A stretch of DNA of 64,000 bases from Octopus bimaculoides (Eukaryota). Shown here piece after piece: positions 12,866-58,507 of this stretch. Under the pieces are notes generated by a model. It was not told where the DNA came from, made no database searches, and saw nothing but the letters and a program-made list of their open reading frames with translations. The position numbers were made by a program, and so were the translations under genes. Location of the stretch: contig NC_068986.1 of NCBI RefSeq assembly GCF_001194135.2, positions 90,562,953 through 90,626,952 of the forward strand, read 5' to 3'. Position 1 is the first letter of the stretch, and each line of letters opens with the position of its first letter.

Positions 12866-12948
12866 TTAACAGCCTTTCAGTTCTTTAGAAGCCATTTCAT
12901 CCAAGATCGGTTCCTTCCAGGTTGCGTAAATGTGCTGCATCGTGCAAA
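12866..12948 (-). CDS. Candidate terminal exon of Cys-rich gene A ((V)CTMQHIYATWKEPILDEMASKELKGC*)
   Basis: Strong acceptor TTGTCTTATTTTCCAG; the phase-1 frame matches the upstream exon and runs to TAA, followed by UTR-like sequence. Confidence 0.55.
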
Positions 12949-13110
12949 CTGGAAAATAAGACAATATTTAAAAATGCAATTCTAATTAATTTGTTCAGCA
13001 TAGAAAGGAATATTGATCACAATGAATTAGAGTCTCATGAACTAAAACAGCGGAAATTATCGGGGATTATGATAAAAACAAGGGAGATAATTAAAAAATC
13101 CTGAACATTT

Positions 13111-13314
13111 GACTGCGGCCATGCTGGAGCACCGCCTTTAGTCGAGCAAATCGACCCCAAGACTTATTCTTTGTAAGCCTAGTACTTATTCTATCGATCT
13201 CTTTTTGCCGAACCGCTAAGTTACGGGGACGTAAACACACTAGCATCGGTTGTCAAGCGATGGTGGGGGGGGGGNNNNNNNNNNNNNNNNNNNNNNNNNN
13301 NNNNNNNNNNNNNN

Positions 13315-13352
<38 letters not shown>

Positions 13353-13509
13353 GACGGGCTTCTTTCAGTTTCCGTCTACCAAATCCACTCACAAGGCTTT
13401 GGTCGGCCCGAGGCTATAGCAGAAGACACTTGCCCAAGGTGCCACGCAGTGGGACTGAACCCGGAACCATGTGGTTGGTAAGCAAGCTACTTACCACACA
13501 GCCACTCCT
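13111..13509 (-). mobile_element. SINE family B, full length (internal N gap)
   Basis: Reverse complement of 29641-30041. Confidence 0.95.
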
Positions 13510-13699
13510 GGGTAGGTTTTTGATTATTTTCCCTCTTCACTGGAAGGAAATTTGAAATCGAAGGTTCATCACTTATATTATTAATTTTTATCATTGGATC
13601 ATATATTTTAATCATATACCTCATACCTATTGAATCAAATGTTTTACATTCGAGTCCCTAGATTGATTCGAATTTTTTTTAATTAACTAATCCCGTAAT

Positions 13700-13925
13700 T
13701 TGTAATTGAACGGTAGAGTGCCCATCCAGACTATTTGATGTTGCTGTGCACCGCTGGTCACAATGCTCTTTCTTATATTGTAGCTTTCGCATGATACTAC
13801 TCTTCTGGATAGCAGGTTTGCAGTTGAATAGACGGGAAGTGAAGTGTTTTGCTCAAGAACACTACGCACCACTGGTCTAGGAATCGAAACCACGACTATT
13901 CGATCATCCTTAGTGCAACACCTGA
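13700..13925 (-). mobile_element. tRNA-derived SINE family C-like fragment
   Basis: Minus strand ggtttcgattcct...gtgttcttgagcaaaacactt, a core shared with 56243-56458. Confidence 0.7.
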
Positions 13926-14108
13926 ACCATGAAGAATTTCAGTCGGACGAATCGATCCTAGTCTTTCTTTTCTTAAAACCTGGTACTTGTTCTGTTAGTC
14001 ACTTTTGCGAACCACCAAATTTTGGGGAGCTAAACACACCAACACGAGGGACAAATACAGACGCTAAACACACAAACACACACAGAAAGTATGCAACAGT
14101 TTACTTAC

Positions 14109-14243
14109 CCAAATTTTTGTCTACACGAATCCGCGCAATAGTCTTCTTCGTAATGCTGCAGGTAAATGTTACACAATGATTCTTGAAAATACCAGGCAGT
14201 TTATCACCATCTTTCAAGCAATTTCCTTTATTATCTTTACAAA
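14109..14243 (-). CDS. Internal exon of Cys-rich gene A (CKDNKGNCLKDGDKLPGIFKNHCVTFTCSITKKTIARIRVDKNL)
   Basis: Acceptor CGTGTTTTCAG, donor G|GTAAGT, 135 nt phase1-phase1, 44 open codons with 4 Cys; similar to the exon at 58388-58507. Confidence 0.75.
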
Positions 14244-14314
14244 CTGAAAACACGATCGAAAATTATCGTTATGACCTGCTGAGATATGCACTTGCAAAAA
14301 TGGATAGCGATCTC

Positions 14315-14389
<75 letters not shown>

Positions 14390-15299
14390 NNNNNNNNNNN
14401 NNNNNNNNNNNNNNNNNNNNNNNNNNNNNNNNNNNNNNNNNNNNNNNNNNNNNNNNNNNNNNNNNNNNNNNNNNNNNNNNNNNNNNNNNNNNNNNNNNNN
14501 NNNNNNNNNNNNNNNNNNNNNNNNNNNNNNNNNNNNNNNNNNNNNNNNNNNNNNNNNNNNNNNNNNNNNNNNNNNNNNNNNNNNNNNNNNNNNNNNNNNN
14601 NNNNNNNNNNNNNNNNNNNNNNNNNNNNNNNNNNNNNNNNNNNNNNNNNNNNNNNNNNNNNNNNNNNNNNNNNNNNNNNNNNNNNNNNNNNNNNNNNNNN
14701 NNNNNNNNNNNNNNNNNNNNNNNNNNNNNNNNNNNNNNNNNNNNNNNNNNNNNNNNNNNNNNNNNNNNNNNNNNNNNNNNNNNNNNNNNNNNNNNNNNNN
14801 NNNNNNNNNNNNNNNNNNNNNNNNNNNNNNNNNNNNNNNNNNNNNNNNNNNNNNNNNNNNNNNNNNNNNNNNNNNNNNNNNNNNNNNNNNNNNNNNNNNN
14901 NNNNNNNNNNNNNNNNNNNNNNNNNNNNNNNNNNNNNNNNNNNNNNNNNNNNNNNNNNNNNNNNNNNNNNNNNNNNNNNNNNNNNNNNNNNNNNNNNNNN
15001 NNNNNNNNNNNNNNNNNNNNNNNNNNNNNNNNNNNNNNNNNNNNNNNNNNNNNNNNNNNNNNNNNNNNNNNNNNNNNNNNNNNNNNNNNNNNNNNNNNNN
15101 NNNNNNNNNNNNNNNNNNNNNNNNNNNNNNNNNNNNNNNNNNNNNNNNNNNNNNNNNNNNNNNNNNNNNNNNNNNNNNNNTATATATATATATATATATA
15201 TATATTAACCATAAGGACTCACTTTTACATGTATATAAATATTCAATCCTGAATATTTGCTGGTGATTGTGTGTGTGTGTGTGTGTGTGTAAAAATAGG

Positions 15300-16270
15300 A
15301 ATAGAACTAAATGATATAGACGCTACCTCATATAGGCCAGGAATGGAAGCACATTGTACGCCGTTCCTAGAAGAAATCGCAACCTGATTGTTTTCATTTT
15401 CTACAGCACGTTCCATGATAGCTTCCCTTGCCCATCTGTCCCACATGTCACCCATGCACATTGGCTTCTTAAACTTGATTGAAGTAGTGGCACGCTCCTC
15501 CTCTTCCATATAGCAATATCCTTGGTCACAACATCTCAAATGTTCTTGTTTAGGCAAATTATCCATTGGTTCTGCATGTCCTACTCTTGTCCTTGTGTCT
15601 TTCACCGCAATTACCAATTTTTTCTTTTCTAAGGTGATCTCTGTCACCTTATCTTTTTACACATACCATTCCATTCCTGACAACATCTGGACTAGCGACA
15701 AGAACAATATCAGAATGTAAAAAAAAATCTAATGTTTTGTCTTATCAGTGCATGGGAAACTGACCCGTAAATATTTATTCAGTCAACACAGACAACTTAG
15801 GGAGTCTTTTTTTACTCTTCTAACCATGTTGAATGAAGCTCCAAATCATTTGAGCAGGCTCAGGAACAGACGCGTTTATGAATTAATTCAGTGGCAGGAA
15901 CTTTGACATCCTTCTTGTCAGCAAACCATAAGATATTTCACTCCCTTTATTTTGAGTTAGAATGTCGGGCTTAACTAATCGAACGACGATATCATCTCCT
16001 TTCTTATGCATCTCTCTATTAAGCCCCAGTCCTGCTTTGCTGCCCCGTTTCCCAACGATCTCTACAATATGCTGCTCAACTATACTCTGGGATGCTCTGG
16101 CAATATTTGTTAAACTTGTATGATGTATCACTGTTACCTGGGGTACCTTTAGATCTCACCTTCGCAAACATCTCATCTCCTTTGATTTTGAAATCTGAAC
16201 GGTTGAAATGGATCTCAGGCGCTGGTGAGAACAACTCCTCAGTGAATAGATGTTGGGGGACACCATGAAG
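15300..16270 (-). mobile_element. HERO/NeSL-type (R2 group) non-LTR retrotransposon RT fragment, internally deleted
   Basis: Broken frames give KVRSKGTPG..SYK..KYC, YGLLTRRMSKFL..N.FINASV, MIWSFIQ and VVCVD*INIYGSVSHALIRQNIRFF (RT motif region). Confidence 0.7.
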
Positions 16271-16385
16271 AGTTTCTCAATTTATTTTTTCTTGCCAAAT
16301 ATTAAGAAAAAGACCATCACGAAATATAATATCTGCTTCAACACACGATTTCACATCAGGAATCTTGCAAAACAAATTCATAATC

Positions 16386-16424
<39 letters not shown>

Positions 16425-18491
16425 CACACGCACGCACGGGCGCACAAACACAAACGCACACACACACACACACACATACATGTGTGTATGTGTGTGTATA
16501 TATATATATATACATACATACTATATATAAATGTATATAAATATATATATACATATATCATACATACATATATATGAATGTAATAAAAACAGACGAATGA
16601 GTTGTTCGGTATTGCTACAATTGTGTTGTTGAGAGTATTTATTGTGACGTATGCATAGTACAACCAACTATATGCATAATACCCATAAGATTACGTAATA
16701 TGTCACGCAACTCCGCAAGTTGCTAAATAAACAAGCGAGCAATGACACGGTGATTAATCAACAGATCAACAACAATGAAAATTTCTTGTCAGATTTACCA
16801 ACATTTAAGAAATGTAAAGCGGGTTTTGATCAACGAAAATGGATAACAAGGTAATGCTGTAAAAGAAAAAACGGTTAAAGTTATTTATATTCTATCGATG
16901 TCGTTCAACTTAGCAACTTCATTCATCAAAGCTTGTAGTAGCAGAACGTGTTTGTATACCGGCACCAAGCGTGATATCTGACTCAATCAAAATATGTTGA
17001 AAGAATAGCCGCCGACCCAATTCATAAAAAACTATTTACAGTGTTGTATTGTTTTGAAGTTATCTACATTAAAAATTGACCTGGTTGATAAAATCCAGTG
17101 TTACTTATTCACTCAATTAACCTTGATAAACGTGCTTCGATAATTAATACTGAATCAATAGAATATTAGCTTTAATCAATGGAGGATCAGTTAATTATAA
17201 TTCAGGAAGAATGGCTTAAAGAAAGCCGTAGTTTAACGAAGTTCCCTCGAAATTTAAGAGAGGGAGGGAAAAGAAGAATATGGAGGAAAAAGAAAAGAAA
17301 TAATAGAAAGGTAATACAATAAATTAAATAGAATGACTGGTCAACACATTGACAGGAAGGTGATATTGGCATAAACGAATAATTATGCATCGTTGACTAA
17401 TGAAAGTATTATAGGCAATAATCGGTGCTAACTTAGATATATGTCAATAAATTTGCGCACTTATTTTAGTTAGATATCGAGATTTATAAACATCAGTTAT
17501 TTAGCAGCAGAGAAGTTAGGAGCTGAATGCCCTAAATAATAAAGAAGGAAAACAGAACAGAAAATAATGAAAAACTATTGACCCACCGTTTCTACTGATC
17601 AATATTGTCACAATATTATTTAGAATAAAACTAGCCAAATAAGATAATACATGTTCAGTAGATCGCTAACACACTACTATAAATATTTAAAACTATTGAG
17701 AGTAATGAGAAAAAGTTAGAGAGCTTATAAAAATCATAAAGAATTATAAAGGCCATACATGCTAATTAATGGTAAATTAATTTGTAGGACTAAAACAAAT
17801 TATAAAGAATTTTAAAGGGAGATAATGCAAATATTATTCGTATATCGTCTAAGGCTAGAAGTAAATAGAAAAGGTTAAATAAATTATATTAAATATCGAT
17901 CAAGTCGATACATTCTTGATATTAGTTGTTAGAACTAAGGGAAGGCAAAAATAGCTTAAATATGATCAGTTACAAACATAATAGCATAGAAGATGCTATC
18001 TAAAATTATCCATGAATCTTATTATTAGTGATAAGGTCTATATTACAGGGATATATACATACGCATCTGATACTCAGGAGAGACTTTATAGAGTCGATTT
18101 AAAGCATTAGAAAGTACTTTGGATAGAATGCAGGCATTTCATCCTTAATTCATCTGACCTATTAATAACACCACCCGTGTATTTTAAGAGTTTCGCTTCG
18201 TCTCTTCTTTTAAATGTATGGCGATGATTACGTCATCTTGATGTAAAAATAGAAGTGGATCCCACGTAAGTGAAAGCACATTGATTAATTTTAACGTTAC
18301 ATTTATATATTGTATTTTTATCCTAGCGGACATTGAGATTTATTCCTCCAGTTACATAATATAGTTACTGTTGAAGTGCAAATATTATGGGTTACATAAT
18401 CTGCACCAATATACGGTACCCAATCATAATCAGTAGAATTGTTATGCGTGGTAACCACTCCATCGACAATATATTACCAAAATGCATATGC

Positions 18492-18532
<41 letters not shown>

Positions 18533-20602
18533 GTGTGCCGGTGATATGAATTCGAGCAACAATGACGTAGAAAAGTATATTACATGGCATACAAGATAAA
18601 CTCTTCATCTATTGTGAATTACCTTCCCTTCTAGGGAAAGTAAACAAGTACCTAGCTTCAGTGGTAACTGACTGAATGAGAAGAGTAAATTTTCCCAAGC
18701 AATAACAAATCTCCAGAAATTAATGCGCCGTTAAAGATGTTGCAACAAGTGCGAAATTCATATCTGTCGCAGTTGCGGTCGCTTCTGAAATTATTTCATT
18801 TCACCTAGCTCTGAAGTATAGAGTGTTTTATAACACAATACGTGTTTAAAAAGATTTTTTTCCGGGCACAAACTGCCGCTTTTGCTGTTTCAACTATACA
18901 GATATATATTTTGTATGTATAGAATTGCTTCTATTACATAATTTGAATTTGTTCTGCTTATGCTAGTGTATAGTTTATATACAAGTTGTATATACTTCAG
19001 AGTAGCTGTTTCGATTTTGTTTCGGGGCTGAGAGGAGTACATGAAATGATAAACTACAATAGCAGCGAAATACGTGACTGTCGACCTCACGGTCACTTCT
19101 GGGACGGTTTCGTTTCCCCTAGCTGTGAAATATATTATGTGTTTTTTTTCACACAATACGTCTGTAAACAGATTTTACACAGACGAAAACCGCAGGCTCT
19201 GGCGTTTCACTCACACACACACACATACATAAATTAAGCTTGTTGTATAGATAGCACACACACACACACACACACACATACACACACACACATGCATACA
19301 CGCACGCACACACATATGTATATAGTGAACGAATGAGATCCAGAGATTCTCAGTATAGATAACACTTTTATAGCGCTCAAATGGTTTCAACTTAATGAGG
19401 GACCATTTCTGCGGGAGTGAAGAGTGGCTATAAGAGGAATGAAATGGAGCAGATATGGAGGCTATCATACGGTAACGAAATTAAATATAACAGCTTGTGT
19501 GTGTGTGTGTGTGTGTGTGTGTATCTATTTATGTATACATGCAAGCAGAAAGAAACCAAAGACTGAAGATTTTCAGTTGATGAATATTTATATATAAATA
19601 TATAGATATCTATATATTAATAGATCAAACTTACACAAAGTACAAACGGCAGCGAATATTAAAGTGGAGAAATTAAGATGTTTTAAGTCCACCAACTGAG
19701 GGCTCGGAGGTCCATTTTAATGTTGGTAGATGTAGTTCACTAAAATATGCAGTCAGTAATGGAAACAAATAGGCATTGGATAAATCGAGCCACCATCATC
19801 AGAGTAGAAAAAAAAAATTATATTTTAGATCATGATGTTGAAAAGTTTAAAGGTGGGATCACCTTTAAACCAGAACGTACAATATTTTCCCCGCCTATAA
19901 ACATGCCATCAATCCACTTCCTACGAAACCATATGTAAGGTCGACCGTGCGAACTCAAAAAGGAGAAATGGTGACGAATGGAAAAACAGGACTCCTTTTA
20001 TTTAAACGTGTCACACGGTCGAACACACAAATATTATATCTATGATGATATACTAATAATATGTCATGCTACGATAACATAGATGACCAGTAATGAAAGA
20101 CCACAACCGTATAAGATGAATAACAGAGATATTTATTGTGGCATTAAAGTGTACGTCTGTGTGAGAGTGTGAATGCGACATATAAGAACATAATCAAAGA
20201 CAGGCCGTCGTACAAAGAAAAGTGTGTATGTGAGTGATACATGTGTGTGTACGTGAGTTATTACAGCAGATGGAAAGAGAGTCAATAACACGTGAGCATT
20301 TATACCAGTTCTTTAGTACACAATAGTATGAGTCTGTATGTGATTCTTGTTATNNNNNNNNNNNNNNNNNNNNNNNNNNNNNNNNNNNNNNNNNNNNNNN
20401 NNNNNNNNNNNNNNNNNNNNNNNNNNNNNNNNNNNNNNNNNNNNNNNNNNNNNNNNNNNNNNNNNNNNNNNNNNNNNNNNNNNNNNNNNNNNNNNNNNNN
20501 NNNNNNNNNNNNNNNNNNNNNNNNNNNNNNNNNNNNNNNNNNNNNNNNNNNNNNNNNNCATAGAAAGTCGTGTAGACGCTGGTGGTGAAGAGGCTGCTTG
20601 GT

Positions 20603-20700
20603 AGTAATCGTGTTGGTCATGACGATGATGCTGGTTAGTAGTAATCGTAGAATCGTGTTGGTCATGACGATGATGCTGGTTAGTAGTCGTAGACTCGTGT
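20603..20700. repeat. 45-bp tandem duplication
   Basis: aatcgtgttggtcatgacgatgatgctggttagtagt occurs twice, with a partial third unit. Confidence 0.9.
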
Positions 20701-20819
20701 TGCTGATGTGGCGACGGCGGTGGTCATCGTTGGCTGGACGAAGCTGTTGAAGTGGTCGCTGACTGATTGTTGCTGCTGCTGTCGTGTGGTACACGGAACA
20801 GTCTCTATAGAGAAACTGG

Positions 20820-21000
20820 ACCGAGACGAATTTGGCCGCCGAGTTAAAGCTATTTATAACACACTTTCGGCTCCCGAAGGCTTCAGAAACATACTCTATC
20901 ACGTGACCTTATTAGGGGCCGTGATTGGTCAGTTTGCGTTCTGGCGGGAACGGTTCGAAGAAGTTGCCGCTTCGAATATTAATCAGTCACGTGATGACAA
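20820..21000 (-). promoter_or_regulatory. Candidate Pol II promoter pointing leftwards
   Basis: CpG-rich; TATAAATA (20851-20858), CACGTG E-boxes (20900-20905, 20988-20993), CCAAT (20924-20928), E2F-like GGCGGGAA (~20943-20950). Confidence 0.45.
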
Positions 21001-22489
21001 GGAATGGGTTCCCTGCTACGCTCGCGTTTGTTTATATTTAAATGAGAAGATTGTATGTAATGGCGATAGTAGTTTTGTATCTAATGGCGATAGGTAGTTT
21101 TGTATGTAATGGCGATCGAGGTGTTAGTTTCACTACACATATTTTCGATCGAGTGTGCATAACTGAAATTTTTCATGATAGTAAATTCAACCACTTCTGT
21201 ATATTCATCAATTTATAAGTACCAGGAATAGTTATAAAATCATAATTTCAACAATTCAAGTCGCATATAATACAAGAAATCTAGAAAGTGGTAAATAACT
21301 ATTCAAGAAATTATAAAAGCGAAACCTGTAGAAAACTATTTGGAATACAATTATGTTAAGGAACATTTTAACTTTTACTTACACGTTTCCAAAATCGATA
21401 TTTTGTTTTTAACGCATATTAATTTCTTACATTCATACAATGTTCTAAATATGCCAAACATATCATTACAAATGCACATTCCGTATAAGTAACATCCGTT
21501 ACATACTGTAAAAGAAATAAAAGGCAAACATTATGTCTATGCTTGGAAGGTGAATAGGCATCTATGATTAGCTTCAGGTTTTGTATACTTGAAATGCTGG
21601 TGAATTGAATTCACTCAAATATGAACTTAGATTTCTGGATGTCAGTAATGTTAAAAGGAAATGTAGAGAAAGTTCGAGAGGGATAAAATGCGCGATAGAT
21701 ATGAGAGAATGTAATGTATAAGGTATCAGGAATTTAAAACGCGAGTAAAAGGACGGAAGTAAAATGGGCAGTAAATTTAGAAAGACAGATTTAGAAAGAC
21801 ATAGATTTGGGAATATTTTTTACATTAATCTTTTTTAGAAGACTTTGCTTTGTAGTGAGTGGGCCAACGGTCTAACAAAAAAAAATTATTATAGACATGT
21901 GTAACGGCTTTAGAAGGGTTACAAAAAAGACAAAAGGGAAGGTGATCCTGTGTCTTTTCTTGGATTGGCGACGTCTGTCGCTTTAAACTAATATCCTTCT
22001 CAACGTAGTCAAGTTTGCTAAGATACCATTATACAGTTGGAATTTTAAAAATTATATTTTCGAGTACAATTACGTCTTGCAAGCTTAGAACTCCAGTGAT
22101 TTATTATTGAGTCATAGTTTAAGCTTATTTCCATTTCCTTTAAATTCAGTACAATATCTGGAGATTTTAATATATTGGAGTGGACGGATAAACGGATAAA
22201 GAAGAGAGAGAGAGAGGTGGGCGGAAGAGAGATTATGGTTCTTATGTTAGTATCGTAGTATAAAGTTTGCAAGTTCAGTGGTATAGATATTATGATAGGA
22301 GTTTAAGAACATTGAAACATACCCGCAGGTTGATATTGAATCGCAACATCAATGGGAAGGACTAGGAGTGAAAGCAAAACTTTTGAAAATGTATTATACA
22401 TCTGTAAGTAAAATAGAATAAACACACGTAAAATATATACACGCCTTTTCATTTAATAAGGATTATGCGTTGATTTATTCTTTTATTCT

Positions 22490-22575
22490 TTAACTGGTTA
22501 CTTTTACAGGACTGCGGTCATGCCGGGGTACCACTCTAAAATGATATAGACGATCGTATCGACCCCAGTATTTAT
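22490..22575 (-). mobile_element. SINE family B tail fragment
   Basis: ctgcggtcatgccggggtaccac...tcgaccccagta. Confidence 0.6.
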
Positions 22576-22600
22576 TCTTCATATCTATTTGTCGAAACTA

Positions 22601-22780
22601 CGAGGGGGTGCTGAAAATGTTCTGGCTTCCCAATTCTTTTTACGTGGCTTAGAAAAGCTGAAGGACCACTGCAATAAGTGTGTGAATCTGAGAGGGGAAT
22701 ATGATGAATAAAATCATAATTACCTGATCTTCCTGTATTTTCTTTTACCCCCAAACCAGGAACTTTTCAGCACGCCCTCG
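22601..22780 (+). mobile_element. Internally deleted mariner (MITE-like), TA-flanked
   Basis: TIRs cgagggggtgctgaaaatgttc / gaacttttcagcacgccctcg, TA on both sides, transposase C-terminus EKLKDHCNKCVNLRGEYDE*. Confidence 0.85.
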
Positions 22781-23956
22781 TATAAATTGCGGAACATAAA
22801 AAGATGGATGCAAATACATACACAGCACACTCAGATGTACACGTATATATGTATGTGTGTATACATACATACGTACATACATACATACATACATACATAC
22901 ATACATACATACATACACACACACAAACGCACATAGATATATACGTGTTGTATGTATGTATGTGTGTGTGTGTGTGTGTGTGTGTATTACCTCCCNNNNN
23001 NNNNNNNNNNNNNNNNNNNNNNNNNNNNNNNNNNNNNNNNNNNNNNNNNNNNNNNNNNNNNNNNNNNNNNNNNNNNNNNNNNNNNNNNNNNNNNNNNNNN
23101 NNNNNNNNNNNNNNNNNNNNNNNNNNNNNNNNNNNNNNNNNNNNNNNNNNNNNNNNNNNNNNNNNNNNNNNNNNNNNNNNNNNNNNNNNNNNNNNNNNNN
23201 NNNNNNNNNNNNNNNNNNNNNNNNNNNNNNNNNNNNNNNNNNNNNNNNNNNNNNNNNNNNNNNNNNNNNNNNNNNNNNNNNNNNNNNNNNNNNNNNNNNN
23301 NNNNNNNNNNNNNNNNNNNNNNNNNNNNNNNNNNNNNNNNNNNNNNNNNNNNNNNNNNNNNNNNNNNNNNNNNNNNNNNNNNNNNNNNNNNNNNNNNNNN
23401 NNNNNNNNNNNNNNNNNNNNNNNNNNNNNNNNNNNNNNNNNNNNNNNNNNNNNNNNNNNNNNNNNNNNNNNNNNNNNNNNNNNNNNNNNNNNNNNNNNNN
23501 NNNNNNNNNNNNNNNNNNNNNNNNNNNNNNNNNNNNNNNNNNNNNNNNNNNNNNNNNNNNNNNNNNNNNNNNNNNNNNNNNNNNNNNNNNNNNNNNNNNN
23601 NNNNNNNNNNNNNNNNNNNNNNNNNNNNNNNNNNNNNNNNNNNNNNNNNNNNNNNNNNNNNNNNNNNNNNNNNNNNNNNNNNNNNNNNNNNNNNNNNNNN
23701 NNNNNNNNNNNNNNNNNNNNNNNNNNNNNNNNNNNNNNNNNNNNNNNNNNNNNNNNNNNNNNNNNNNNNNNNNNNNNNNNNNNNNNNNNNNNNNNNNNNN
23801 NNNNNNNNNNNNNNNNNNNNNNNNNNNNNNNNNNNNNNNNNNNNNNNNNNNNNNNNNNNNNNNNNNNNNNNNNNNNNNNNNNNNNNNNNNNNNNNNNNNN
23901 NNNNNNNNNNNNNNNNNNNNNNNNNNNNNNNNNNNNNNNNNNNNNNNNNNNNNNNN

Positions 23957-24037
23957 TGATAGAATAAGTACTAGGCTTAAAAAATAAGTTCTGAAGTCGA
24001 TTTGTTCCACTAAAACCCTTCAAAGCAGTGGCCCAGC
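23957..24037 (+). mobile_element. SINE family B tail fragment
   Basis: gatagaataagtactaggctt...gtcgatttg...gtggcccagca. Confidence 0.75.
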
Positions 24038-25630
24038 AGAGGTTAGTAATAAAGTCACAGTTTTGACTTGGTAAAAAAAGTTACAGGAAAAATGTTACAA
24101 TTAATTTATGGGGGCTGGTAATAAAGTCACAAGAAAAAAGTCAAAATGCCATCATATTTATATATGTTGGTATTACATGTATGAGAAAAAAAAAAAAGAT
24201 TCACGTTTTGTTCATATCTTAAGCACAGTAAGGTAATCAAACAAAAAAATTTAAGTCAGCATTTTTTTGAAAGTACATGGCATGTACAGATTGAAAACAA
24301 CTTACATAATATCGTGGCATTACATGTATATTCAACGTTTTTAATGATGATGATTAAGACAAATATTCCAGCCAACGCCACGAAGAAATTCTGTCACAGT
24401 CTTGTGGTCCCCCTGTCGAGCAACACACAAGTTGTGAAGGCGTTCTTGTAGCTGCACATAGCGTCGACGAGCTCTTCTTTGAGTGGGGTTGCCAACAGCG
24501 TCCTGCTGGATAATGGTGCTCACTGTCGCTTCTTCACGTTGAAACTATGCAATGACGCGCCAGAGTGAAGGATAGTAGTGAGGTTCAGGAATTTATTATT
24601 CCACCCTTCACAGCTGGCGTTGTTGTTCACGGCATTGTTCATGTTGTTCACAAGCGTTGTTGTTCATGGTGGCGTCCTGCACATTCTGTAGGTGAGGGGC
24701 AAACATTGGTTGAATGTGACGCATTCTCAGAGGTATCAGAGTATCACCTGACATGGCAACTGGAGCCACTAACATTAAGTACAATCGAAGTACATGAGCA
24801 ACTCCTCGGCTTCAAGTGGATCTTGTGGAATGACAGTTTTGAGGTATCTCATACTTTCATTAACGTCTTCAAGGGGCAAAAAAGCTAGAGCATCAATCAT
24901 GTCACAAAGCAAACGAAACTCAGCATTGGTATTTTAATGTGTTCCCAAACCCAGTTCCTGGATCTTACGCCAAGTAGACTGCGCAAGATGATAGAAACAA
25001 CCTTTGTTCTCTACGTCGGAGCCAAACATTGCAAGAACAGCTCTCAATACACCATCTTCAAAATCAGTCACCACGGTTTGCACATTAATAGAATAGCTTA
25101 GGTCTGCATACTTATCAACTATAGCCTGAAAGAGTTCTTCGTAGGTGGCACGAGTCTTGTTTGAAAGAAGAGCATACACTGAAGTAACAGATGTAAGACC
25201 GAAAGGGACACGAATGGCATAGATCTATTTGAAAATATTTGGAACCTAGCAAAGTTGCCATCCATATATAGAGTATGAACTCCAGCAAAGAGTCTGAGGC
25301 CATCACAAGTACCATACACTAGAATGAGGTTTGCATTTGGTCCGTTATCATAGAGTAAGAACTCTTCGGGATTAGGGCCAACTGTTATAGTATAGACAGT
25401 AGGAAGTTCATTTAGATTTTTTAGCAAACATGGTACAGGAAGAGTAGGCTGTTTGTTGCGCAGAGTTCGTGACTCATTAATTTACCATCAGTTCTGCATA
25501 CATCTTTATACAAATTGATTGACATATTAACCTTAAAACAGTGAGAATTCTACAGTTAGCCTTTCTATTAAAGAAAGACGCAGAAATAGTGCTAACGTTG
25601 CCTTCTTTAAAATTATTTTTTCCTGTGACT
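24038..25630 (-). mobile_element. Mutator-like (MULE) DNA transposon remnant
   Basis: LYMDGNF, YALLSNKTRATYEELF, VVTDFE, GCFYHLAQSTWRKIQELGL (MULE transposase domain); subterminal aaaaaagtcaca repeats at the left end and a matching piece near 25620. Confidence 0.9.
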
Positions 25631-26559
25631 ATATATATACATACATATACATATATATATATATATATACATATAATTCCTCAACATTAATTCCTCAACA
25701 TTTTGATAGTAATAAAATGACCTGATACTACTATGACCAGTGAAACCTCTAGATTCTAATACTTTTATAGCCTTGTCCATGCATACTGCTTACACCTTCC
25801 CTCTCTTTAGAAGTAATTGTCCCTCTGCTATCACCACTAGATAAGAAACAATAGAATTCTGAGACAGTTAAAACTTTTGTCTAGAATCAATTACTAGCCT
25901 GATAGACTCCGCTATGTCAAGATGGACTTATATATTCTTCCTCACATTTGGATTTTATGTATGCTCTCTCCCACTTGGATTTAATATGTTGCCACATTTA
26001 TAATATGTCTTTTTTTCTGCATTTTCGTGCAGCTGAAGATTGCTCTTCATATTGCATTTAAGGTAATGCTCACATTACTTAAATAAATTGAAGTAGCATG
26101 AAACGTGCGTACTGCAATCACTTTTGAAATCCGTGTTGCTTATTATTTGATTTTAATCACCCATCCTTTTGGGATGCGATATTCGGGTGCCTTCGCATAA
26201 GTACCATATTCAAGCCTTGAATCTATATACATATATATATATAGTTTAAGGATAAATACATGCTTATATTGAATTTTCTACGCACGTTTCCCCATTAAAA
26301 TAGTTTGGAGTGCTGCGATATACGTACACATATATGTACATATAAATGTCCATCCATAATGAGGGCGCTATTCAGCACCAGCATTGCTAGTAATAAGAGT
26401 CAAAGCAATTAAAAATGTAGAATGTTCAAGTACCTAATTAAGAAGTAACCCCCCCCCCNNNNNNNNNNNNAAAGCATACAAGATCGCGATGTAATGAATG
26501 TGATTTAGTTATGTTATTCCAGATGCGATTTAACATGAAATGAAAATAAAAAGTCGATA

Positions 26560-27200
26560 TAGCTCACAGAATGGATCCTTAGAACTTTTCTGTCAAGGGA
26601 TCCCGATACCACCGCTACTCCCTTCTCCACGTTTGCCAAGTCTCACCTTAAATATTGCTGTCCACCATAATCTCCGTACACAAAATTAAACGTTGAGAAT
26701 CGAAGTACTCCAGAGATCAATGCTAATAAATAAATGAATAAATATCATGATAGGTTCTCGTTATTGGAATCACCTGAGAAAGCTCTATTTTCTCCAACAC
26801 CAACATGAAAGCCACATGAATGGGGAAAATATTTCATTAACGCTGTCCAAACGATACTGGCATGTAGCTCAGAAGTCATCCAAAGCTAGGCTCCCGTGCC
26901 ATATGCTCTACAAAAATCTAGATCATATCACTTAACATTTCAACAACTTTTTTTTTAAATCTCAACTGGTTCCGCATTTTTCAACTGTGTCTCGAAATAG
27001 ATAAAACACTCAATAACATTCAAGTAATATCTGAATAAATTCCTCCAAAATAATACCAGGAAAATCACAGACAGCCAGTTGCATTTCGAGATGGCTATGG
27101 CGTCCCAAAACATGACTTAGAAGATTCCTTCAGATGGCACTATTAATGTTAGACACGGCCTGGGCCAAGACTCAAGTCATAATCACCAATATAGCTAAAA
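26560..27200 (+). mobile_element. Degenerate CR1-clade LINE 3' fragment
   Basis: FSTFAKSHLKYCCP*SPY and YWNHLRKL.. resemble the CR1 C-terminus at 61200-61600. Confidence 0.55.
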
Positions 27201-27789
27201 ATCTAGAATGTTCAAGTACCTAATTAAGAAGTAAAAATGCGAGATAATACCTTTGGTAATTCTCTTAAACATCTATAGTTTTATATCTATATGCGATATA
27301 TATCTAGTGCATGTGACATCCATGGATTATTCTCTAAAATTCCAGCCTTGAGAAGAGAAAGGAAGAGAGAAAGAGAGGGAAAGTGGGAAAGAGAGAAACG
27401 AAAAATTATCATACCACAAGAAAAAAATGTCAAGATGAGCCAGGTATCTATTTAGTATTGTAATTCTCTTAAGTTACTAGATACCTACGTGAACTTAAAT
27501 TTTACAACATATTTTAAACAAATTTTACAAAAATATTCAAGTTTCTTACCTTCTAATCTTGAAGATGATATCTACGTTTAGAAATACAGAATGATATAAG
27601 TAATTTTCAAATATCCTTGGAATGGTGGTGTTGAAGACACCAGCTGTTATCATACAGATTTTATTGAAAGTCATTGTTGTAACTTAACGTGTGCTGTTGA
27701 TTTATCATGTGAACCATGACATGTTATTGGGAAATATTACAAAATGTTTAGAAATGCGTTTCTTTTCTCATTTTCTTTATTGATCTGGT

Positions 27790-28870
27790 CTAGAATAAGG
27801 GGGACTTTCATAGATCTCTCGAAACCGATGAAATCGAGGTGATTAATATTCCTCTTAATGGCAACAGAAAAAGAATAGGCAAGAAGGTACCAGACGGCCT
27901 TATTTTCTGAGGAGGAAGAACAATGTTTTAGCGGTTAGTGAGTAGCCTTTGAAAATAAATATGGTCGACAAAAGGAAGAGAGATAAGAGAGTGAGTTTGG
28001 AGTGGCAGAGTGGAGGTGGCACGAGGCAATTCCTACATGGGACAGGGACCCCAGAGTTAGTTTTTTACTCACTAGACTCCTCAATCTCTCTCTATTTCTA
28101 CTACTCTCTACAGGAATCTAGTTTGATCTTTGGAAACAGAGTATTCCATTCCCCCAAAAAGAAGCCACTCTAAATCTGTCAATCTTCCTCCTATTACACT
28201 CATTTCGAATATCTATTAGGTAATGGAGCCATTAACAACAACGTCTTCAAACGCTTTGGATCTAGTACTCTTTCGTTCTCTCCTCACTCACTCCTTAACG
28301 ATCATCATGGTTTTTATAAAGCCAGATTCACAAGTGATCTGTTCTTCTGTGTCAAACTCCTGTGGGTTCTTACATTAAAGCAATATTGTTACCCTTGACA
28401 CCAACAAAATTTTCAATGCATCTGGCATTTAGTCCAATTGCTTGTTAGTATGATAAGTAGATTGATAGACTAGAAGAAGAATTGTCATAGAAATAAAATC
28501 CATTCTATTATAGGGGAAAGACCCAAAGAATTTATGGTAATTTTCGAACCTTCGTATGACAGAATGCCGAAGTCCATTTTGAAGTTAATTGTAATAACTG
28601 CATAGCTAAGACAGTATTAAGTCTAACTATAAATAAGGAAACCAAAAAATCAAAGTTCTAGTCTAAACCTAATGGGAAAGAAATAAATTCGTTAAAGTGG
28701 CTAGATAAGAGTTTGGAGGATGAAATTGAGTATAATCTACTCAGTAATCAAGATAAGGCAGCGACTATATTCATAAGTGAATAAGAGGGGGGAAGGGAGA
28801 AGGTATTATAGGGTGATTGGTAAATATAGAGCAATAAGTATCGAAGATCTGGCCTTAAAGTGTAAGACGA
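27790..28870. mobile_element. Degenerate Jockey-like LINE fragments in mixed orientation
   Basis: Plus 28110-28450 resembles the RT N-terminal half (PIPKK..., HGF.KA, VTLDT.K.F); minus 28560-28870 and 27790-27960 resemble the C-terminal region. Heavily decayed. Confidence 0.45.
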
Positions 28871-28914
28871 AGAGAGTATATATATATATATATTTGTATA
28901 TATATGGGAGAATG

Positions 28915-29045
28915 TACGAAAAAACAACAGACGAGGACAGGTGGTGTAAATAACAAAAGGATGTATTAGTATGACGCTCAGGAATACGGAAAGTCTTTGA
29001 TGTTTCGAGCTACGCTCTTCAACAGAAAGAATACGGAGACAAGAA
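28915..29045 (-). mobile_element. Penelope-type terminal repeat with degenerate hammerhead (28994-29030)
   Basis: TCTTT-CTGTTGA-A-GAGC-GTA-GCTC-GAAA-CAT-C-AAAGA; a related truncated copy lies at 56790-56900. Confidence 0.55.
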
Positions 29046-29389
29046 TACTTGTCCCATTGACGTTGGTGTGCTTACGTTGCCGTAACTTAGTGGTCCAGCA
29101 AAAGAGACAATATTAAGTACTAGGGGCGATTCTTTCGACTAAATTTCCCTTCAAACAAACAGATTACGATTCATTGTAGGCATCATTTAAAACATTACTT
29201 CTGTAGATTTTGGTTAGTCTATAATAAGCACTTGATCTCTATTTAAAAATCTCAATATAATTGGATTCTTCATCAGTTAAGCTTTTACCGTGTAAAATGA
29301 CTACAAAATGAGTTTTTGTTTATTATCTACTGATTATAGTTGTTGAGTTTTTCATAACACTAAGTTTAAATTGACGCTTCTTTTCTTTT

Positions 29390-29530
29390 ATCTTTTACTT
29401 GTCTCAGCCATTATGCTGCGGCCATGCTGGGACAACACTTTGAAGGGAAATTTAGTCGAAAGAATCGACCCTAGTACTTAATATTGTCCATTTTGCCGGA
29501 CCACTAAGTTACGGCAACGTAAACACACCA
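29390..29530 (-). mobile_element. SINE family B tail
   Basis: cttttacttgtctcagccatt...gcggccatgctgg...aatcgaccc. Confidence 0.8.
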
Positions 29531-29554
29531 ACGTAAAAATAGAAGTTGAAAATG

Positions 29555-29640
29555 CAGAATTGTTAGCACGCCGGATGAAATGCTTAGCGGTATTTTGTCT
29601 GCCGCTACGTTCTCAGTTCAAATTCCGCCGAGATTGACTT
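29555..29640 (+). mobile_element. SINE family A head, truncated by a family B copy
   Basis: gcagaattgttagcacgccggatgaaatgcttagcgg...ttcaaattccgccgag. Confidence 0.88.
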
Positions 29641-30041
29641 AAGCGCAGGAGTGGTTGTGTGGTAAGTAGCTTGCTTACCAACCACATGGTTCTGGGTTCA
29701 TTCCCACTGCGTGGCACCTTGGGCAAGTGTCTTCTACTACAGTCTCGGGCCAACCAAAGCCTTGTGAGTGGATTTGGTAGACGGAAAACTTAAATAAGCC
29801 CATCGTATATATGTATATATATATATGTGTGTGTGTATATGTTTGTGTGTCTTTGTTTGTTCCCCCAACATCGCTTGACAACCGATGCTGGTGTGTTTAC
29901 GTCCCCGTAACTTAGTAGTTCGGTAAAAGAGACCGATAGAATAAGTACTAGGCTTCCAAAGAATAAGTCCTGGAGTCGATTTGCTCGACTAAAGGCGGTG
30001 CTCCAGCATGGCCACAGTCAAATGACTGAAACAAGTAAAAG
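29641..30041 (+). mobile_element. SINE family B, full length
   Basis: tRNA-like head with B box gggttcatt, core ccttgggcaag, internal (TA/TG)n, tail ...gactgaaacaagtaaaaga. Confidence 0.95.
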
Positions 30042-30547
30042 ATTTAACCGGTTTCACAGTTTACACTGATTTTCAAAAAGTTCAAATAGAAAGACGTGGC
30101 TTATGTCGCAGTTGTCTTTGCTTCTGACTAGTCTTTGAAGCTTGCAAAATATACTGTCACATGATACTAACGCACGGGAAATGTACAAAAGGTTCTAATC
30201 TTAATCATGCGTTAATTCTTTATAAACACTTGACAGAAGACTTTCAGAACATTGATTATTTGGACATGTTCAGTCAACCGTGTCAGCCTTAACTTACGAT
30301 TACAAACATTGTCGCTTGTAATCACGGACGTAGCGAGGAACCTACAAAAATTCCTAAAACCAGTCAGGTGACTATTCTCTACCAATCAAATCCCATTCAA
30401 AACATACTAATTTGAGCCATGAACTTCCTATAAAAATAGAGCAAGCTTCATACACTAGTCAGAAGTAAGACAACTGCGACATAAACCACGTCTTTCTATT
30501 TCAACTTTTTGAAAATCAGTGTAAACTATGAAACCGGTTAAATCTTT
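30038..30547. mobile_element. Foldback/MITE with ~105-bp TIRs
   Basis: 30038-30145 is the reverse complement of 30440-30547 (aaagatttaaccggtttc... / ...gaaaccggttaaatcttt). Confidence 0.75.
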
Positions 30548-30646
30548 AAATATGATAATAAAAAATATATTTTAACTATTTTCAGTGCATTTTCAACTTC
30601 AAGTTTTCCTATATTTCTACCCGTGTGGAATAAAATAGCTTTGTTT

Positions 30647-30687
<41 letters not shown>

Positions 30688-30780
30688 TAAATAATACACA
30701 NNNNNNNNNNNNNNNNNNNNNNNNNNNNNNNNNNNNNNNNNNNNNNNNNNNNNNNNNNNNNNNNNNNNNNNNNNNNNNNN

Positions 30781-30821
<41 letters not shown>

Positions 30822-30995
30822 GACATCTTCTTTCTGTTTCCGTCTACCAAATCCACTCACAAGGCTTGGCTCATCCCGGGGGTGGTGGTGGATATAGTGA
30901 AAGACACTCACTAATGATGCCCGCAGTGGGATCGAATCTAGAACTATATTGGTGAGAAGCAAACTTCTTAACACACATCCACGCCTCCGCCTGCT
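30781..30995 (-). mobile_element. SINE family B, 5' part
   Basis: ttccgtctaccaaatccactcacaagg...gcagtgggatcgaa. Confidence 0.8.
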
Positions 30996-32149: not shown

Positions 32150-32590
32150 TCTTGTTCTGGAACACTGGAAATGACATTAATTTTGTGAGAGCAGACAGTA
32201 ACCTGTTGTCAAATGTTTCACAGGGTTTCTCAAGGTCTAGATGTTAAGTACTTAACACCCAAGTAACAATCTCAAAATCCTCGCTCTCCCCAATACAGTA
32301 GTTTTTGCTTTGAGTCCTGAGTTTCTCAGCTATTGTTGGGATTTTGCTTTGTCTATTTCTTTTCTTTTTAGCTTAAGCCAATATTTGCCATGTAGGAGCT
32401 TTTCTTGCCATCGTTTTATTATGATACGTTGCTGTTCCAGTTTTAGTTTGGATTTCAGTTGTTTTACAGCTTTTGTTGTTTCTTCTTTTTCTTCATAGTT
32501 GTTAGGTACTATGACTTCTTTTCTGTATTGGTCAGCTTCCTTAAAAACAGAAAGCAGTTTTTTGTTTTGTTCGTGTTTTGTGGCTATTGG
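32150..32590 (-). mobile_element. R4/Dong-type non-LTR element, deleted 3' fragment
   Basis: KRWQEKLLHGKYW...LRNSGLKAK joined directly to TVLGRARILR. Confidence 0.7.
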
Positions 32591-32596
32591 TATCAG

Positions 32597-32624
32597 TTAT
32601 TATTATTATTATTATCATTATCAA

Positions 32625-32664
<40 letters not shown>

Positions 32665-32735
32665 GTCATCATCATTGTTGTTATTATTATTGTTGTTGTT
32701 GTTGTTGTTGTTGCCGCTGCTGCTGTTGTTATTAT
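32597..32735. repeat. Compound (TAT)/(CAT)/(TGT) trinucleotide microsatellite
   Basis: Direct reading. Confidence 0.95.
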
Positions 32736-55925: not shown

Positions 55926-56137
55926 TGTCAATCCCCACTTGCATCTAATCAGCTTTAAATGCTTATTCGTTGAATTGGTATCCAAAAAGCTTGTATCTAC
56001 TCAGAATTTATAAAATTTCTTTACTAATCACTGATGAATGATCACTTGACACTCTGAAAAGAGTATGTATACAAACACACATACATATATGTGTTTATAT
56101 GTGTCTATATGTATATATATATGTATATATATATATG

Positions 56138-56168
<31 letters not shown>

Positions 56169-56194
56169 GTATATATGTGTATATACATACATAC

Positions 56195-56242
<48 letters not shown>

Positions 56243-56245
<3 letters not shown>

Positions 56246-56458
56246 GGCGCGTGGCTTGGTGGTTAGGATATTCGGCTCACAATCTTAGGGTTGTGATTTC
56301 GATTCTCATACGCGTGTTGTGTCCTTGAGCAAAACACTTCATTTCACGTTTCTCCAGTCCATTCAGCTAGCGAAAATGAGTAGTACGTGTATTTCAAAGA
56401 GAGAAGCCTTATCACATTCTGTGTCATACTGAATCTTCTTATGAACTTTGTTAAGGGC
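56243..56458 (+). mobile_element. SINE family C-like
   Basis: ggcgcgtggcttggtggttagg...tttcgattc...gtgtccttgagcaaaacac. Confidence 0.8.
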
Positions 56459-57152
56459 NNNNNNNNNNNNNNNNNNNNNNNNNNNNNNNNNNNNNNNNNN
56501 NNNNNNNNNNNNNNNNNNNNNNNNNNNNNNNNNNNNNNNNNNNNNNNNNNNNNNNNNNNNNNNNNNNNNNNNNNNNNNNNNNNNNNNNNNNNNNNNNNNN
56601 NNNNNNNNNNNNNNNNNNNNNNNNNNNNNNNNNNNNNNNNNNNNNNNNNNNNNNNNNNNNNNNNNNNNNNNNNNNNNNNNNNNNNNNNNNNNNNNNNNNN
56701 NNNNNNNNNNNNNNNNNNNNNNNNNNNNNNNNNNNNNNNNNNNNNNNNNNNNNNNNNNNNNNNNATATATATATATATATATATATAGTCAATTTAAACA
56801 TGAACAAACAAGAAAAAACACGAAAGAAAGCACGAAAAAACAACGCGAGGACGTGGAATAAGTACAGTGTTATTGGACGCTCAGGAAAGGAAAGGAAAGA
56901 AAGAGGATATGTATGTATGTATATGTATAGAAAAAGGAATAGTTATACACGAAAAGTGCCAAGTTTCTGAATCGAAAGGTTTATCAATAATATTTTTAAA
57001 ATAGCTTCCAGACTAGGTATTTTTCTGGAAATAACTTTATTCCACCAATTAAGGATCTCTTAGAAAGGGTCAAGCGTACTGCAAATCTACTCTTCTGAAT
57101 GATCAATTAAAAGTGAGATATTTAACATGTGTATATTTTATTTTACTTACAG

Positions 57153-57210
57153 ATGCATGCATTTTCGAAAGTTTTGTTTTTATTAGTCCTTCCCATTGTT
57201 GTGAATTCAG
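57153..57210 (+). CDS. Signal-peptide exon of Cys-rich gene B (MHAFSKVLFLLVLPIVVNS)
   Basis: Acceptor TTTTACTTACAG directly before ATG, 19 codons with a hydrophobic core, donor CAG|GTATGT in phase 1. Confidence 0.75.
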
Positions 57211-57578
57211 GTATGTTTCAATATTCTTAGACAATTAAATTTTATCCGAAACACTGAACATTGCTGATTTTATATGACAGAAGAATGAAGACATAAACTC
57301 TAGCTTCTTCACATTCCACTCTGATATTTAAAAGTCTGCAGATATGGCACTGAATTTTAAAGAGGTCGAAAAAACGTTGATTCAATAAAAGAAATAATTC
57401 AAATTTCAGCAGACTTCTTTTGCCCTAACAAAACATAATTATGTACCTATATATAGACTCGCATCCTGACATGCTTGACTGCATTGAAAAGAAAATTACT
57501 CAAAAGTTAGATACGATCTTCGCAAAGACACCGATTCATTTTTACGTTTAGTCCTCTGTATTTTCTTCCAGACCGAGT

Positions 57579-57950
57579 GGAGGCGCAATGGCCCAGTGGT
57601 TAGGGCAGCGGACTCGCGGTCATAGGATCGCGGTTCCGATTCCCAGACCGGGCGTTGTGAGTGTTTATAGAGCGAAAACACCTAAAGCTCCACGAGGCTC
57701 CGGCAGGGGATGGTGGCGAACCCTGCTGTACTCTTTCACCACAACTTTCTCTTACTTCCTGTTTCTGTTGTGCCTGTAATTCAAAGGGTCAGCCTTGTCA
57801 CACTGTGTCTCGCTGAATATCCCCGAGAACTACGTTAAGGGTACACGTGTCTGTGGAGTGCTCAGCCACTTGCACGTTAATTTCACGAGCAGGCTGTTCC
57901 GTTGATCGGATCAACTGGAACCCTCGACGTCGTAAGCGACAGAGTGCCAA
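57579..57950 (+). mobile_element. SINE family C, full length, intronic
   Basis: tRNA-like head tggcccagtggttagg...ggttccgattccc, CpG-rich body. Confidence 0.88.
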
Positions 57951-58387
57951 CATTTCTTCCAGACCTATTATGCACACCTTACAAAACGAAAAGATCGTCA
58001 ATAGGTCGTTAACCAAATATAAAACAGTGTCGTATCAATTTATGTTCGTAAATTGTATCTGCAAAAATTATTCCTCATAGTTCTATGTTCTATATTCAGT
58101 TCTATACTAATTTTCAGCTCCTTTTTTCTTGTTTGAAATTCTACACAGTTTTATATATAATTTTTTTCGATATTGCAGTCACGTATTATATCCCTCCAAA
58201 CAATTTTCTTCGTTACTGCCTGGACATTATTTACTAAAATTCAATGTTTAATTTAATATTCGACTAAACTAGAATTATTGAAATCTCAAGTAAAAGAAAC
58301 ATACACTAAATACAGACACCAGCTCAACCCCTCAAACAAAAAAAATAGAGTCTCACTATTTTCTTTATAACTATATTTCTGTTGCAG

Positions 58388-58507
58388 AATGTAACGGATG
58401 TCCCTTAGACGGAAAATGCATTTGTGGTGGGAGTGGTATATTTAGATCAATGTATGACTGTAAGAAAATAACTTGTCGTAGGAAAACGATCAAGATTCGG
58501 GAAATCC
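58388..58507 (+). CDS. Second exon of Cys-rich gene B ((E)CNGCPLDGKCICGGSGIFRSMYDCKKITCRRKTIKIREI)
   Basis: Acceptor TATTTCTGTTGCAG, donor C|GTAAGT, 120 nt phase1-phase1, in frame with the signal exon; 6 Cys. Confidence 0.78.

Follow-up and report, generated by a model that had tools for sequence, protein, structure and literature searches.

Two small cysteine-rich exons that face away from each other in the genome of Octopus bimaculoides raise the question of whether they belong to two related genes, and which exon of one would then correspond to which exon of the other. They lie in a stretch of 64,000 nucleotides (nt), hereafter the window, in which position w corresponds to position 90,562,952 + w of chromosome CM046606.1 (~90.563-90.627 Mb). 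A first-pass annotation of this sequence described exon A and exon B, of 135 and 120 nt and both of phase 1-1, as the middle exons of two divergent paralogous genes, A and B, and as part of a possible lineage-specific cluster of disulphide-rich secreted effectors. Its description of the exons is accurate: both can be read directly with their splice sites present, the peptides GNC..GIFKNHCVTFTC..KTIARIR (A) and GKC..GIFRSMYDCKKITC..KTIKIR (B) occur in the order given, and the exons point apart on opposite strands with 44 kb between them. The relation between them is a different one. Exons A and B are non-equivalent exons that encode different halves (module 2 and module 1, respectively) of one type of protein, and we consider it highly probable, at roughly 90%, that the window holds two head-to-head members of an Octopus-only secreted family with 12 cysteines, namely the annotated gene LOC106869794 and an unannotated copy for which we keep the name gene B.

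The gene structure of LOC106869794

Exon A and its tail exon, which had been assigned to a separate three-exon gene A, are the last two of the four main coding exons of LOC106869794 (coding exons 3 and 4) and make up the 3' half of this annotated gene. The gene is read from the minus strand. Its signal-peptide exon (22323..22401, 79 nt, MYNTFSKVLLSLLVLPIDVAIQYQPA) has an acceptor, ttacag, that abuts the ATG and a phase-1 donor, gtatgt; the maximum hydropathy over nine residues is 2.8, and the exon is homologous to the signal-peptide exon of gene B at 57153..57210. The module-1 exon, which we call exon C (21383..21505, 123 nt, phase 1-1, six cysteines, CNGCYLYGMCICNDMFGIFRTLYECKKLICVKNKISILET), was found by tblastn with exon B, with which it shares its splice signals, and is part of the proteins P0010 and P0007. 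Exon A (14109..14243, 135 nt, phase 1-1, four cysteines, CKDNKGNCLKDGDKLPGIFKNHCVTFTCSITKKTIARIRVDKNL) is the module-2 exon, with acceptor ttttcag and donor gtaagt, and matches the module-2 hidden Markov model (HMM) at E=7e-25. The tail exon (12866..12948, 83 nt, two cysteines, CTMQHIYATWKEPILDEMASKELKGC plus TAA) is matched by the tail HMM at E=5e-13.

Splicing of 22401..22323, 21505..21383, 14243..14109 and 12948..12866 yields P0010 (XP_052824911.1, isoform X2) exactly, a product of 139 residues that can be aligned over its whole length with P0002, P0004 and P0006 and keeps 12 of 12 cysteines. Isoform X1 (P0007, XP_052824910.1), whose N-terminus reads MPRYY+MYNTF, is X2 preceded by MPRYY from 24320..24306; this 15-nt coding mini-exon (24306..24320, minus strand) is used in X1 only, was located by pattern match and is directly followed by a GTAAGT donor, and the annotated gene range ends at window position 24320. 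P0007 was returned by the family profile search and P0010 belongs to its cluster; in RefSeq they are isoforms X1 and X2 of the O. bimaculoides 'uncharacterized protein LOC106869794'.

The signal-peptide exon and exon C lie 7 kb upstream of exon A, beyond two assembly gaps, and a scaffolding error would assign exons C and A to separate genes in tandem, the rest of whose exons would have to lie in the gaps of intron 2. There are indeed two gaps of estimated length in this intron (14390-15180, 791 nt, upstream of exon A, and 20354-20558, 205 nt), and a RefSeq model elsewhere in the gene cluster, LOC106869796, appears to be fused from two genes. Set against this, the 7.1 kb of intron 2 fall within the family range of 3.0-7.3 kb, each module occurs exactly once in the product, which can be aligned along its full length with three paralogues, and HMM scans of the readable 5.2 kb between the gaps revealed no extra family exon. 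The splice across the gaps reproduces XP_052824911.1 exactly and is colinear with the three paralogues, which supports the order and orientation of the exons, and we regard a scaffolding error as very improbable.

Two further gaps fall within LOC106869794, one in intron 3 between exon A and the tail exon (13275-13314) and one in the intron that leads from the mini-exon to the signal-peptide exon (22996-23956); another (62022-62932, 911 nt) lies downstream of exon 2 of gene B. All other gaps are intergenic, no coding exon is touched by any listed gap, and the lengths of introns that span gaps are estimates. The locus of P0007 on CM046606.1 in GCA_001194135.2 matches window positions 2866..34320 in reverse complement at 100% identity, with identical gaps. 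Microsatellites of the type (GT)n or (AT)n flank many of the gaps (14316-14389, 13315-13352, 16387-16560, 18486-18532, 22830-22990 and 61958-62021) and are probably the reason why the assembly breaks there. Intron 2 also carries, at 20560-20930 on the minus strand, a sequence that resembles a promoter, in which TATAAATA is accompanied by two CACGTG palindromes. Next come an ATG and 2.3 copies of a 45-nt tandem repeat, which runs on into the gap at 20354-20558; a mobile element or a nested gene may have its 5' end here.

Gene B and its counterpart exon

Exon C, which the first-pass annotation missed, is the true counterpart of exon B. Within the window, tblastn aligns the two at E=2e-11 with 54% identity and with six of six cysteines kept. 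Exon B (58388..58507, plus strand, 120 nt, phase 1-1, six cysteines, CNGCPLDGKCICGGSGIFRSMYDCKKITCRRKTIKIREI) is the module-1 exon of gene B, bounded by the acceptor tgttgcag and the donor gtaagt. The signal-peptide exon of the same gene (57153..57210, plus strand, 58 nt, MHAFSKVLFLLVLPIVVNS; hydropathy 3.3) has the ttacag|ATG acceptor and the phase-1 donor gtatgtttcaat found elsewhere in the family; the signal-peptide exons of the two genes are homologous, lie ~0.9-1.2 kb upstream of exons B and C and both end in phase 1 at gtatgtttcaat. The kinship extends to the surrounding DNA, since blastn finds two colinear blocks of ~62% identity (57105-57549 with 22453-21932, and 58048-58554 with 21823-21338) that start 48 nt upstream of the ATG and span both exons of gene B together with both ends of intron 1; the middle of this intron (57550-58047) gave no blastn match. 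Each of the four indels between the coding sequences of B and C has a length divisible by three, which is not so in the flanks.

The comparison of exon A with exon B gave a different result. A local alignment of the two scored 35 against 23.8±4.7 for 20,000 shuffles (z=2.4, p=0.03), and softer gap penalties brought this to p=0.003 at the cost of four gaps in the alignment; tblastn of A against B within the window returned E values of 2-3. For A against C, shuffling gave p=0.55 and 0.32 under two gap settings. A paralogue of B should also resemble C, and the A-C value of 0.55 therefore argues against paralogy of A and B. Profile searches agree: an HMM of B and C did not place exon A among the top 20 of 1866 six-frame open reading frame (ORF) fragments of the window, phmmer with exon A found neither B nor C, and the module-2 HMM did not pick up exons B and C when run on the window. 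At the level of the families, hhalign of the module-1 and module-2 alignments gave a probability of 0.2% (E=0.3), and the local profile-profile score of 16.1 lay within a column-shuffle null of 17.8±3.5 (p=0.62). The GIF and KTI..IR motifs on which the pairing had in part been based are unique to the LOC106869794 copy of module 2, where the other copies read GVI, GVL, GAV, GVY or GVH; what the two modules do have in common is phase 1-1, size and the skeleton G-x-C-x14-C-x4-C.

These common features, the cysteine-rich character of both exons and the shuffle values for A and B are what would speak for two separate divergent three-exon genes with homologous middle exons. We give this arrangement almost no credence: exon A is coding exon 3 of LOC106869794, the RefSeq product and the colinear paralogues contradict such a split, a search of the readable sequence for a signal-peptide exon of gene A found none, the A-C, hhalign and column-shuffle results all run the other way, and the B+C and module-2 HMMs each miss the other type of exon. 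A similarity of A and B beyond chance is not confirmed by these alignments. Shuffling was the check that the first-pass annotation had itself proposed, with a non-significant alignment as grounds for giving up the pairing, and on the evidence of the shuffles and of the family comparisons its view of A and B as paralogous middle exons falls.

We conclude that gene B arose when a LOC106869794-like gene was duplicated over at least its 5' 1.45 kb, at a synonymous divergence (dS) of ~0.5, and that it is an unannotated copy whose visible exons are intact and in which every splice signal is kept, including the donor of exon 2. Several observations nevertheless weigh against its standing as a full member of the family. 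The homology to LOC106869794 detected by blastn ends 47 nt past exon 2. Neither the module-2 and tail HMMs nor an acceptor and ORF scan found a module-2 or tail exon in 58508..64000, an interval that includes the 911-nt gap. A word-indexed search of the protein collection with the B peptide returned no gene B protein; the same search with the A peptide also returned nothing, a false negative, in that P0007 and P0010 contain that peptide exactly. Finally, gene B and exon C, the youngest pair, have dS=0.54 and a ratio of non-synonymous to synonymous divergence (dN/dS) of 0.63, which is not significantly below 1 (p=0.26).

Each of these points would fit a truncated partial duplicate, either a pseudogene or a short gene of signal peptide plus module 1 that ends ...EIRK at an in-frame TAA in the donor. 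The restriction of the homology to 57105-58554, although the ends of intron 1 still align, points the same way, as does the fact that a counterpart of the mini-exon at 24320, the upstream 5' exon, was looked for and not found. Other features speak for a functional gene: both exons are open reading frames with their splice signals retained, all six cysteines are kept with every indel a multiple of three, and the CGG motif and one-residue deletion that set gene B apart are common to an apparently complete paralogue further along the chromosome (locus L005). Moreover, intron 2 measures 3.0-7.3 kb in the family and the window ends 5.5 kb after exon B, with the gap at 62022-62932 in between. On balance, we place a truncated or dead gene B somewhat below even odds.

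Directly after the module-1 exon, five of six members have GTAAGTAA, an x-K-stop when read in frame; this holds for the window at 21382-21375 and 58508-58515, and loci L002, L003 and L004 were also compared. The O. sinensis module-1 exon is followed by GTAAGTGA, with the stop differing by one base change. Read-through of the exon-B donor would give a gene B product of 61 residues, and the UniProt entry A0A0L8HMF6 (71 residues, ending ...SCK) looks like a gene model that was read through a module-1 donor in this way. The same comparison of donor sites took in window positions 14108-14101, at the end of exon A.

A secreted 12-cysteine family in Octopus

The wider family shows what the full-length form of these genes looks like. 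Every complete member has a 5' exon spliced onto ttacag|ATG and then four coding exons with all introns in phase 1, and encodes a precursor of 131-144 residues, of which ~110 form the mature protein with 12 conserved cysteines. Module 1 occupies 120-123 nt and has six cysteines in the pattern C-N-G-C-x5-C-x-C-x11/12-C-x4-C, to which exons B and C both conform; module 2 occupies 132-135 nt in phase 1-1 and has four, in the pattern C-K-D-N-x-G-N-C-x14-C-V-x-F-x-C; the tail exon, of 68-83 nt, adds two and ends in a cysteine. Exact mapping of LOC106869794, LOC106869804, LOC106872966 and the O. sinensis gene LOC118763828 gives coding exons of 73-85, 123, 132-135 and 68-83 nt, and P0002, P0004 and P0008 have exons of 73-85, 123, 132 and 68 nt, all in phase 1 and with canonical splice sites. 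In every mapped member the start codon directly follows ttacag or tttacag, and an untranslated upstream exon is therefore a feature of the family. All 12 cysteines align over the full length of P0007, P0002, P0004 and P0008. P0002 (LOC106869804, 131 residues) illustrates the arrangement: a signal peptide and a module of the B/C type precede YCKDNKGNCLEHGEHRVGVINNQCVTFTC... and ICTLEHVYSYWKNSTHKEIDQC, and these last two parts are clearly homologous to exon A and its tail exon.

The family appears to be restricted to Octopus. When 1.84 billion representative proteins were searched with a profile of exons B and C, four proteins matched (P0001-P0004), all from Octopus, with E values from 1e-15 to 2e-5; a fifth match was of low complexity and was judged spurious. 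A full-length profile returned seven proteins, every one of which belongs to O. bimaculoides or O. sinensis and almost all of which carry the name 'uncharacterized'. No relative outside Octopus was found among these representative proteins, either with the 42-position profile at its threshold of ~40 bits or by word-indexed search, a sensitivity at which divergent cephalopod relatives may be missed and which counts to that extent against an Octopus-only family. Judging from these sequences, we describe the group as an Octopus-restricted secreted family, annotated in RefSeq and UniProt as uncharacterised proteins. Searches of the literature by LOC, UniProt and XP identifiers found no paper, and general keyword searches found nothing on this Octopus family.

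The family has at least six members in O. bimaculoides, of which five lie within ~170 kb; in O. sinensis, at least two are annotated. Along CM046606.1 the cluster consists of LOC106869794 (90.576-90.587 Mb, minus strand), gene B (90.620 Mb, plus strand, head to head with LOC106869794), two tandem genes at 90.678-90.702 Mb that RefSeq joins into one model of 216 residues, and LOC106869804 (90.739 Mb, plus strand); LOC106872966 lies outside it at 103.76 Mb. The joined model (LOC106869796, XP_052824914.1) reads module 1, module 2, module 1, module 2, tail, and occupies ~10001-33928 of locus L005 (CM046606.1 90668445-90712372, reversed). It is probably a fusion of two tandem genes, because a six-frame HMM scan places an unused tail exon (ECTLQHIYAGVQKYVGDELKYC) between its halves, at ~18257 of that locus. 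The gene of A0A0L8HMF6 presumably also lies in the cluster, because P0001, its old RefSeq model, also takes in part of LOC106869796; P0001 and P0009 were not located on contigs. In O. sinensis, an extra family tail exon (CLLDHVYSQWQRSITQTMA) is found at 28339-28253 on the minus strand of locus L004 (CM016864.1), 8.5 kb downstream of LOC118763828 and in the opposite orientation, and the cluster is therefore of mixed orientation in this species too.

Compared with LOC106869794, the members LOC106869804, LOC106872966 and LOC106869796 of O. bimaculoides and LOC118763715 and LOC118763828 of O. sinensis show 35-48% identity and the same four-part architecture, 12 cysteines, exon lengths and phases, and ttacag|ATG junction. 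LOC106869794 differs from them in a module-2 exon that is 3 nt longer and a tail that is 15 nt longer; gene B differs in having only its first two coding exons in view and in being unannotated. The first-pass expectation of a lineage-specific secreted cluster thus holds in so far as two clustered paralogues without a database family are present, with exons B and C, and not A and B, as the real pair. Its proposed checks by HMM search and by flanking paralogues gave the results described above. The products, which it took for short peptides, are proteins of ~110 residues with 12 cysteines.

Selection among the paralogues is purifying. Over all pairs, Nei-Gojobori dN/dS of the mature region, another of the checks that had been proposed, ranges from 0.20 to 0.63, and the proportion of non-synonymous differences (pN) is significantly below that of synonymous differences (pS) in 9 of 10 pairs. 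Values of dS among paralogues range from 0.5 to 2.2, and most of the duplications are therefore old. The family has grown by local duplication, both tandem and inverted.

The DNA between the two genes had been described as saturated with transposable elements. It contains four decayed, reverse-transcriptase-like ORF fragments of retroelements with Pfam matches to zf-RVT (33059-33544, minus strand), RVT_1 (36786-37172 and 40425-40763, both plus) and DUF6451 (54029-54652, plus), all below the Pfam gathering score with E=1e-5 to 9e-5. A SINE-like (short interspersed nuclear element) sequence of ~210 nt is present in the window in 11 copies or fragments of 72-89% identity, at 5107-5211, 6259-6402, 6689-6888, 29554-29640, 33746-33868, 44793-44929, 50931-51069, 51093-51298, 53107-53249, 53813-53952 and 58676-58885, the last of which lies 170 nt downstream of exon B. 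At least 14% of the bases read were repeated within the window. These results check the word 'saturated' only in part.

Predicted fold and comparison with known systems

AlphaFold2 models of LOC106869794 and LOC106869804 are all-beta, with a predicted local distance difference test (pLDDT) score of 74-92 over the modules. The top matches of both models among structures in the PDB are pairs of fibronectin type I (FnI) modules (3EJH, 3GXE, 2CKU, 2CG6 and 1QGB), with Foldseek probabilities of 0.85-0.99, E values of 0.02-0.2, target-normalised template modelling (TM) scores of 0.41-0.51 and a root mean square deviation of about 5 Å. FnI pairs and the octopus models are both made of two consecutive disulphide-stapled all-beta modules of ~45 residues each, and in fibronectin each FnI module is encoded by one phase-1-1 exon, as are modules 1 and 2 here. 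Several results tell against this assignment. The models were built on alignments of six sequences, no Foldseek match reached E<=0.001 (best 0.02), and Pfam fn1 (PF00039) gave no match at E<=10 for five members; the FnI modules, each built of a two-stranded and a three-stranded antiparallel sheet, have four and four cysteines, paired 1-3 and 2-4, with a different spacing, whereas here there are six and four (plus two), and the conserved aromatic residues of FnI are not evident in the octopus family. The FnI-like fold is therefore best treated as a reproducible but weak lead from predicted models.

The models also bear on whether modules 1 and 2 are ancient internal duplicates, in which case the likeness of A and B would be real but too old for detection by sequence. 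Each module is a single phase-1-1 exon of 120-135 nt, both have G-x-C, 14 residues and C-x4-C (counted on the family alignments), the strand patterns of the two predicted halves are alike, and over ~90 columns the predicted structures align with pairs of FnI modules that are themselves homologous, which implies a similar topology of the halves. The sequences themselves offer no signal beyond cysteine and glycine: in the cysteine-anchored register the G and three C columns alone score, and hhalign stays at E=0.3. In addition, the conserved glycine that lies between cysteines is shifted by two positions from one module to the other, module 1 carries two more cysteines, the third disulphide of module 2 can form only with the tail exon, and the structural matches are weak (E>=0.02). 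We regard an internal duplication as possible but rather unlikely, and continue to treat exons A and B as non-equivalent exons of one type of protein.

If the predictions hold, the protein would enter the endoplasmic reticulum by way of its predicted signal peptide, form six disulphides and fold as two all-beta modules stacked into a rigid rod that resembles an FnI pair; once outside the cell, it might bind a partner or serve as a ligand, possibly through exposed beta-sheet edges and faces, as FnI pairs do. Nothing supports the effector activity suggested in the first-pass annotation, or activity as a toxin. A bolder and, in our judgement, unlikely reading would have the family originate in octopods as a new two-module fold rich in disulphides, which may have arisen by internal duplication of an FnI-like exon, has expanded in the 170-kb cluster and serves as an octopus-specific extracellular signal or recognition molecule. 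Were this true, candidate roles would include that of a pheromone passed on by contact or through the water, of a factor of gametes or the egg coat, or of a binding protein in immunity or saliva, and gene B would be a young duplicate that is either turning into a shortened single-module peptide gene or decaying. On the more sober reading of two head-to-head members, nothing at this locus is mechanistically surprising, and the family is an ordinary lineage-restricted secreted one. What the analysis adds is a corrected relation of the exons, the unannotated paralogue gene B, the definition of a family that has neither a curated domain nor a solved relative, a tentative fold and a probable fused model, LOC106869796. 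Lineage-restricted secreted families are a common source of pheromones, immune factors and toxins, and the octopus family is a reasonable candidate for studies of expression and binding.

How, then, does the family compare with systems already known? Pfam searches with single exons and with five full-length members returned only noise (zf-CW, CFEM and PHD, E>0.07), and the family profile had no match at E<=10 among PDB sequences. UniProt labels A0A0L8H3R2 (P0004) 'UPAR/Ly6 domain-containing', and the octopus proteins do share with Ly6/uPAR a small, secreted, beta-rich form with many disulphides and an N-terminal C-x2-C. We nevertheless rejected this assignment: Pfam UPAR_LY6 (PF00021) gave no match at E<=10, no three-finger structure appeared in the top 50 Foldseek matches of either model, and the C-terminal CC...CN motif of Ly6/uPAR (CCxxxxCN) is lacking in the octopus family. 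Beta-microseminoprotein (PSP94/MSMB, PF05825), which like the octopus proteins is a secreted, two-domain, all-beta protein of ~10-12 kDa with 10-12 cysteines, was set aside as well, with no Pfam match at E<=10 and no MSMB among the top Foldseek matches. VWC (PF00093) likewise gave no Pfam match at E<=10 for the five members. A squid beta-MSP-like pheromone is reportedly a cephalopod precedent for a pheromone role. Octo-SAP, a sperm attractant of octopus of ~11 kDa, was considered as a further candidate.

A family of the same kind, by description, is MgCRP-I of Mytilus, which its published account presents as a multigene family, restricted to a mollusc lineage, of secreted cysteine-rich products with invariant cysteines and without known function (PMC4558851). 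The members of MgCRP-I described there are short peptides with six cysteines and a hypervariable mature region, whereas the octopus proteins combine two modules and 12 cysteines with a dN/dS of 0.2-0.6.

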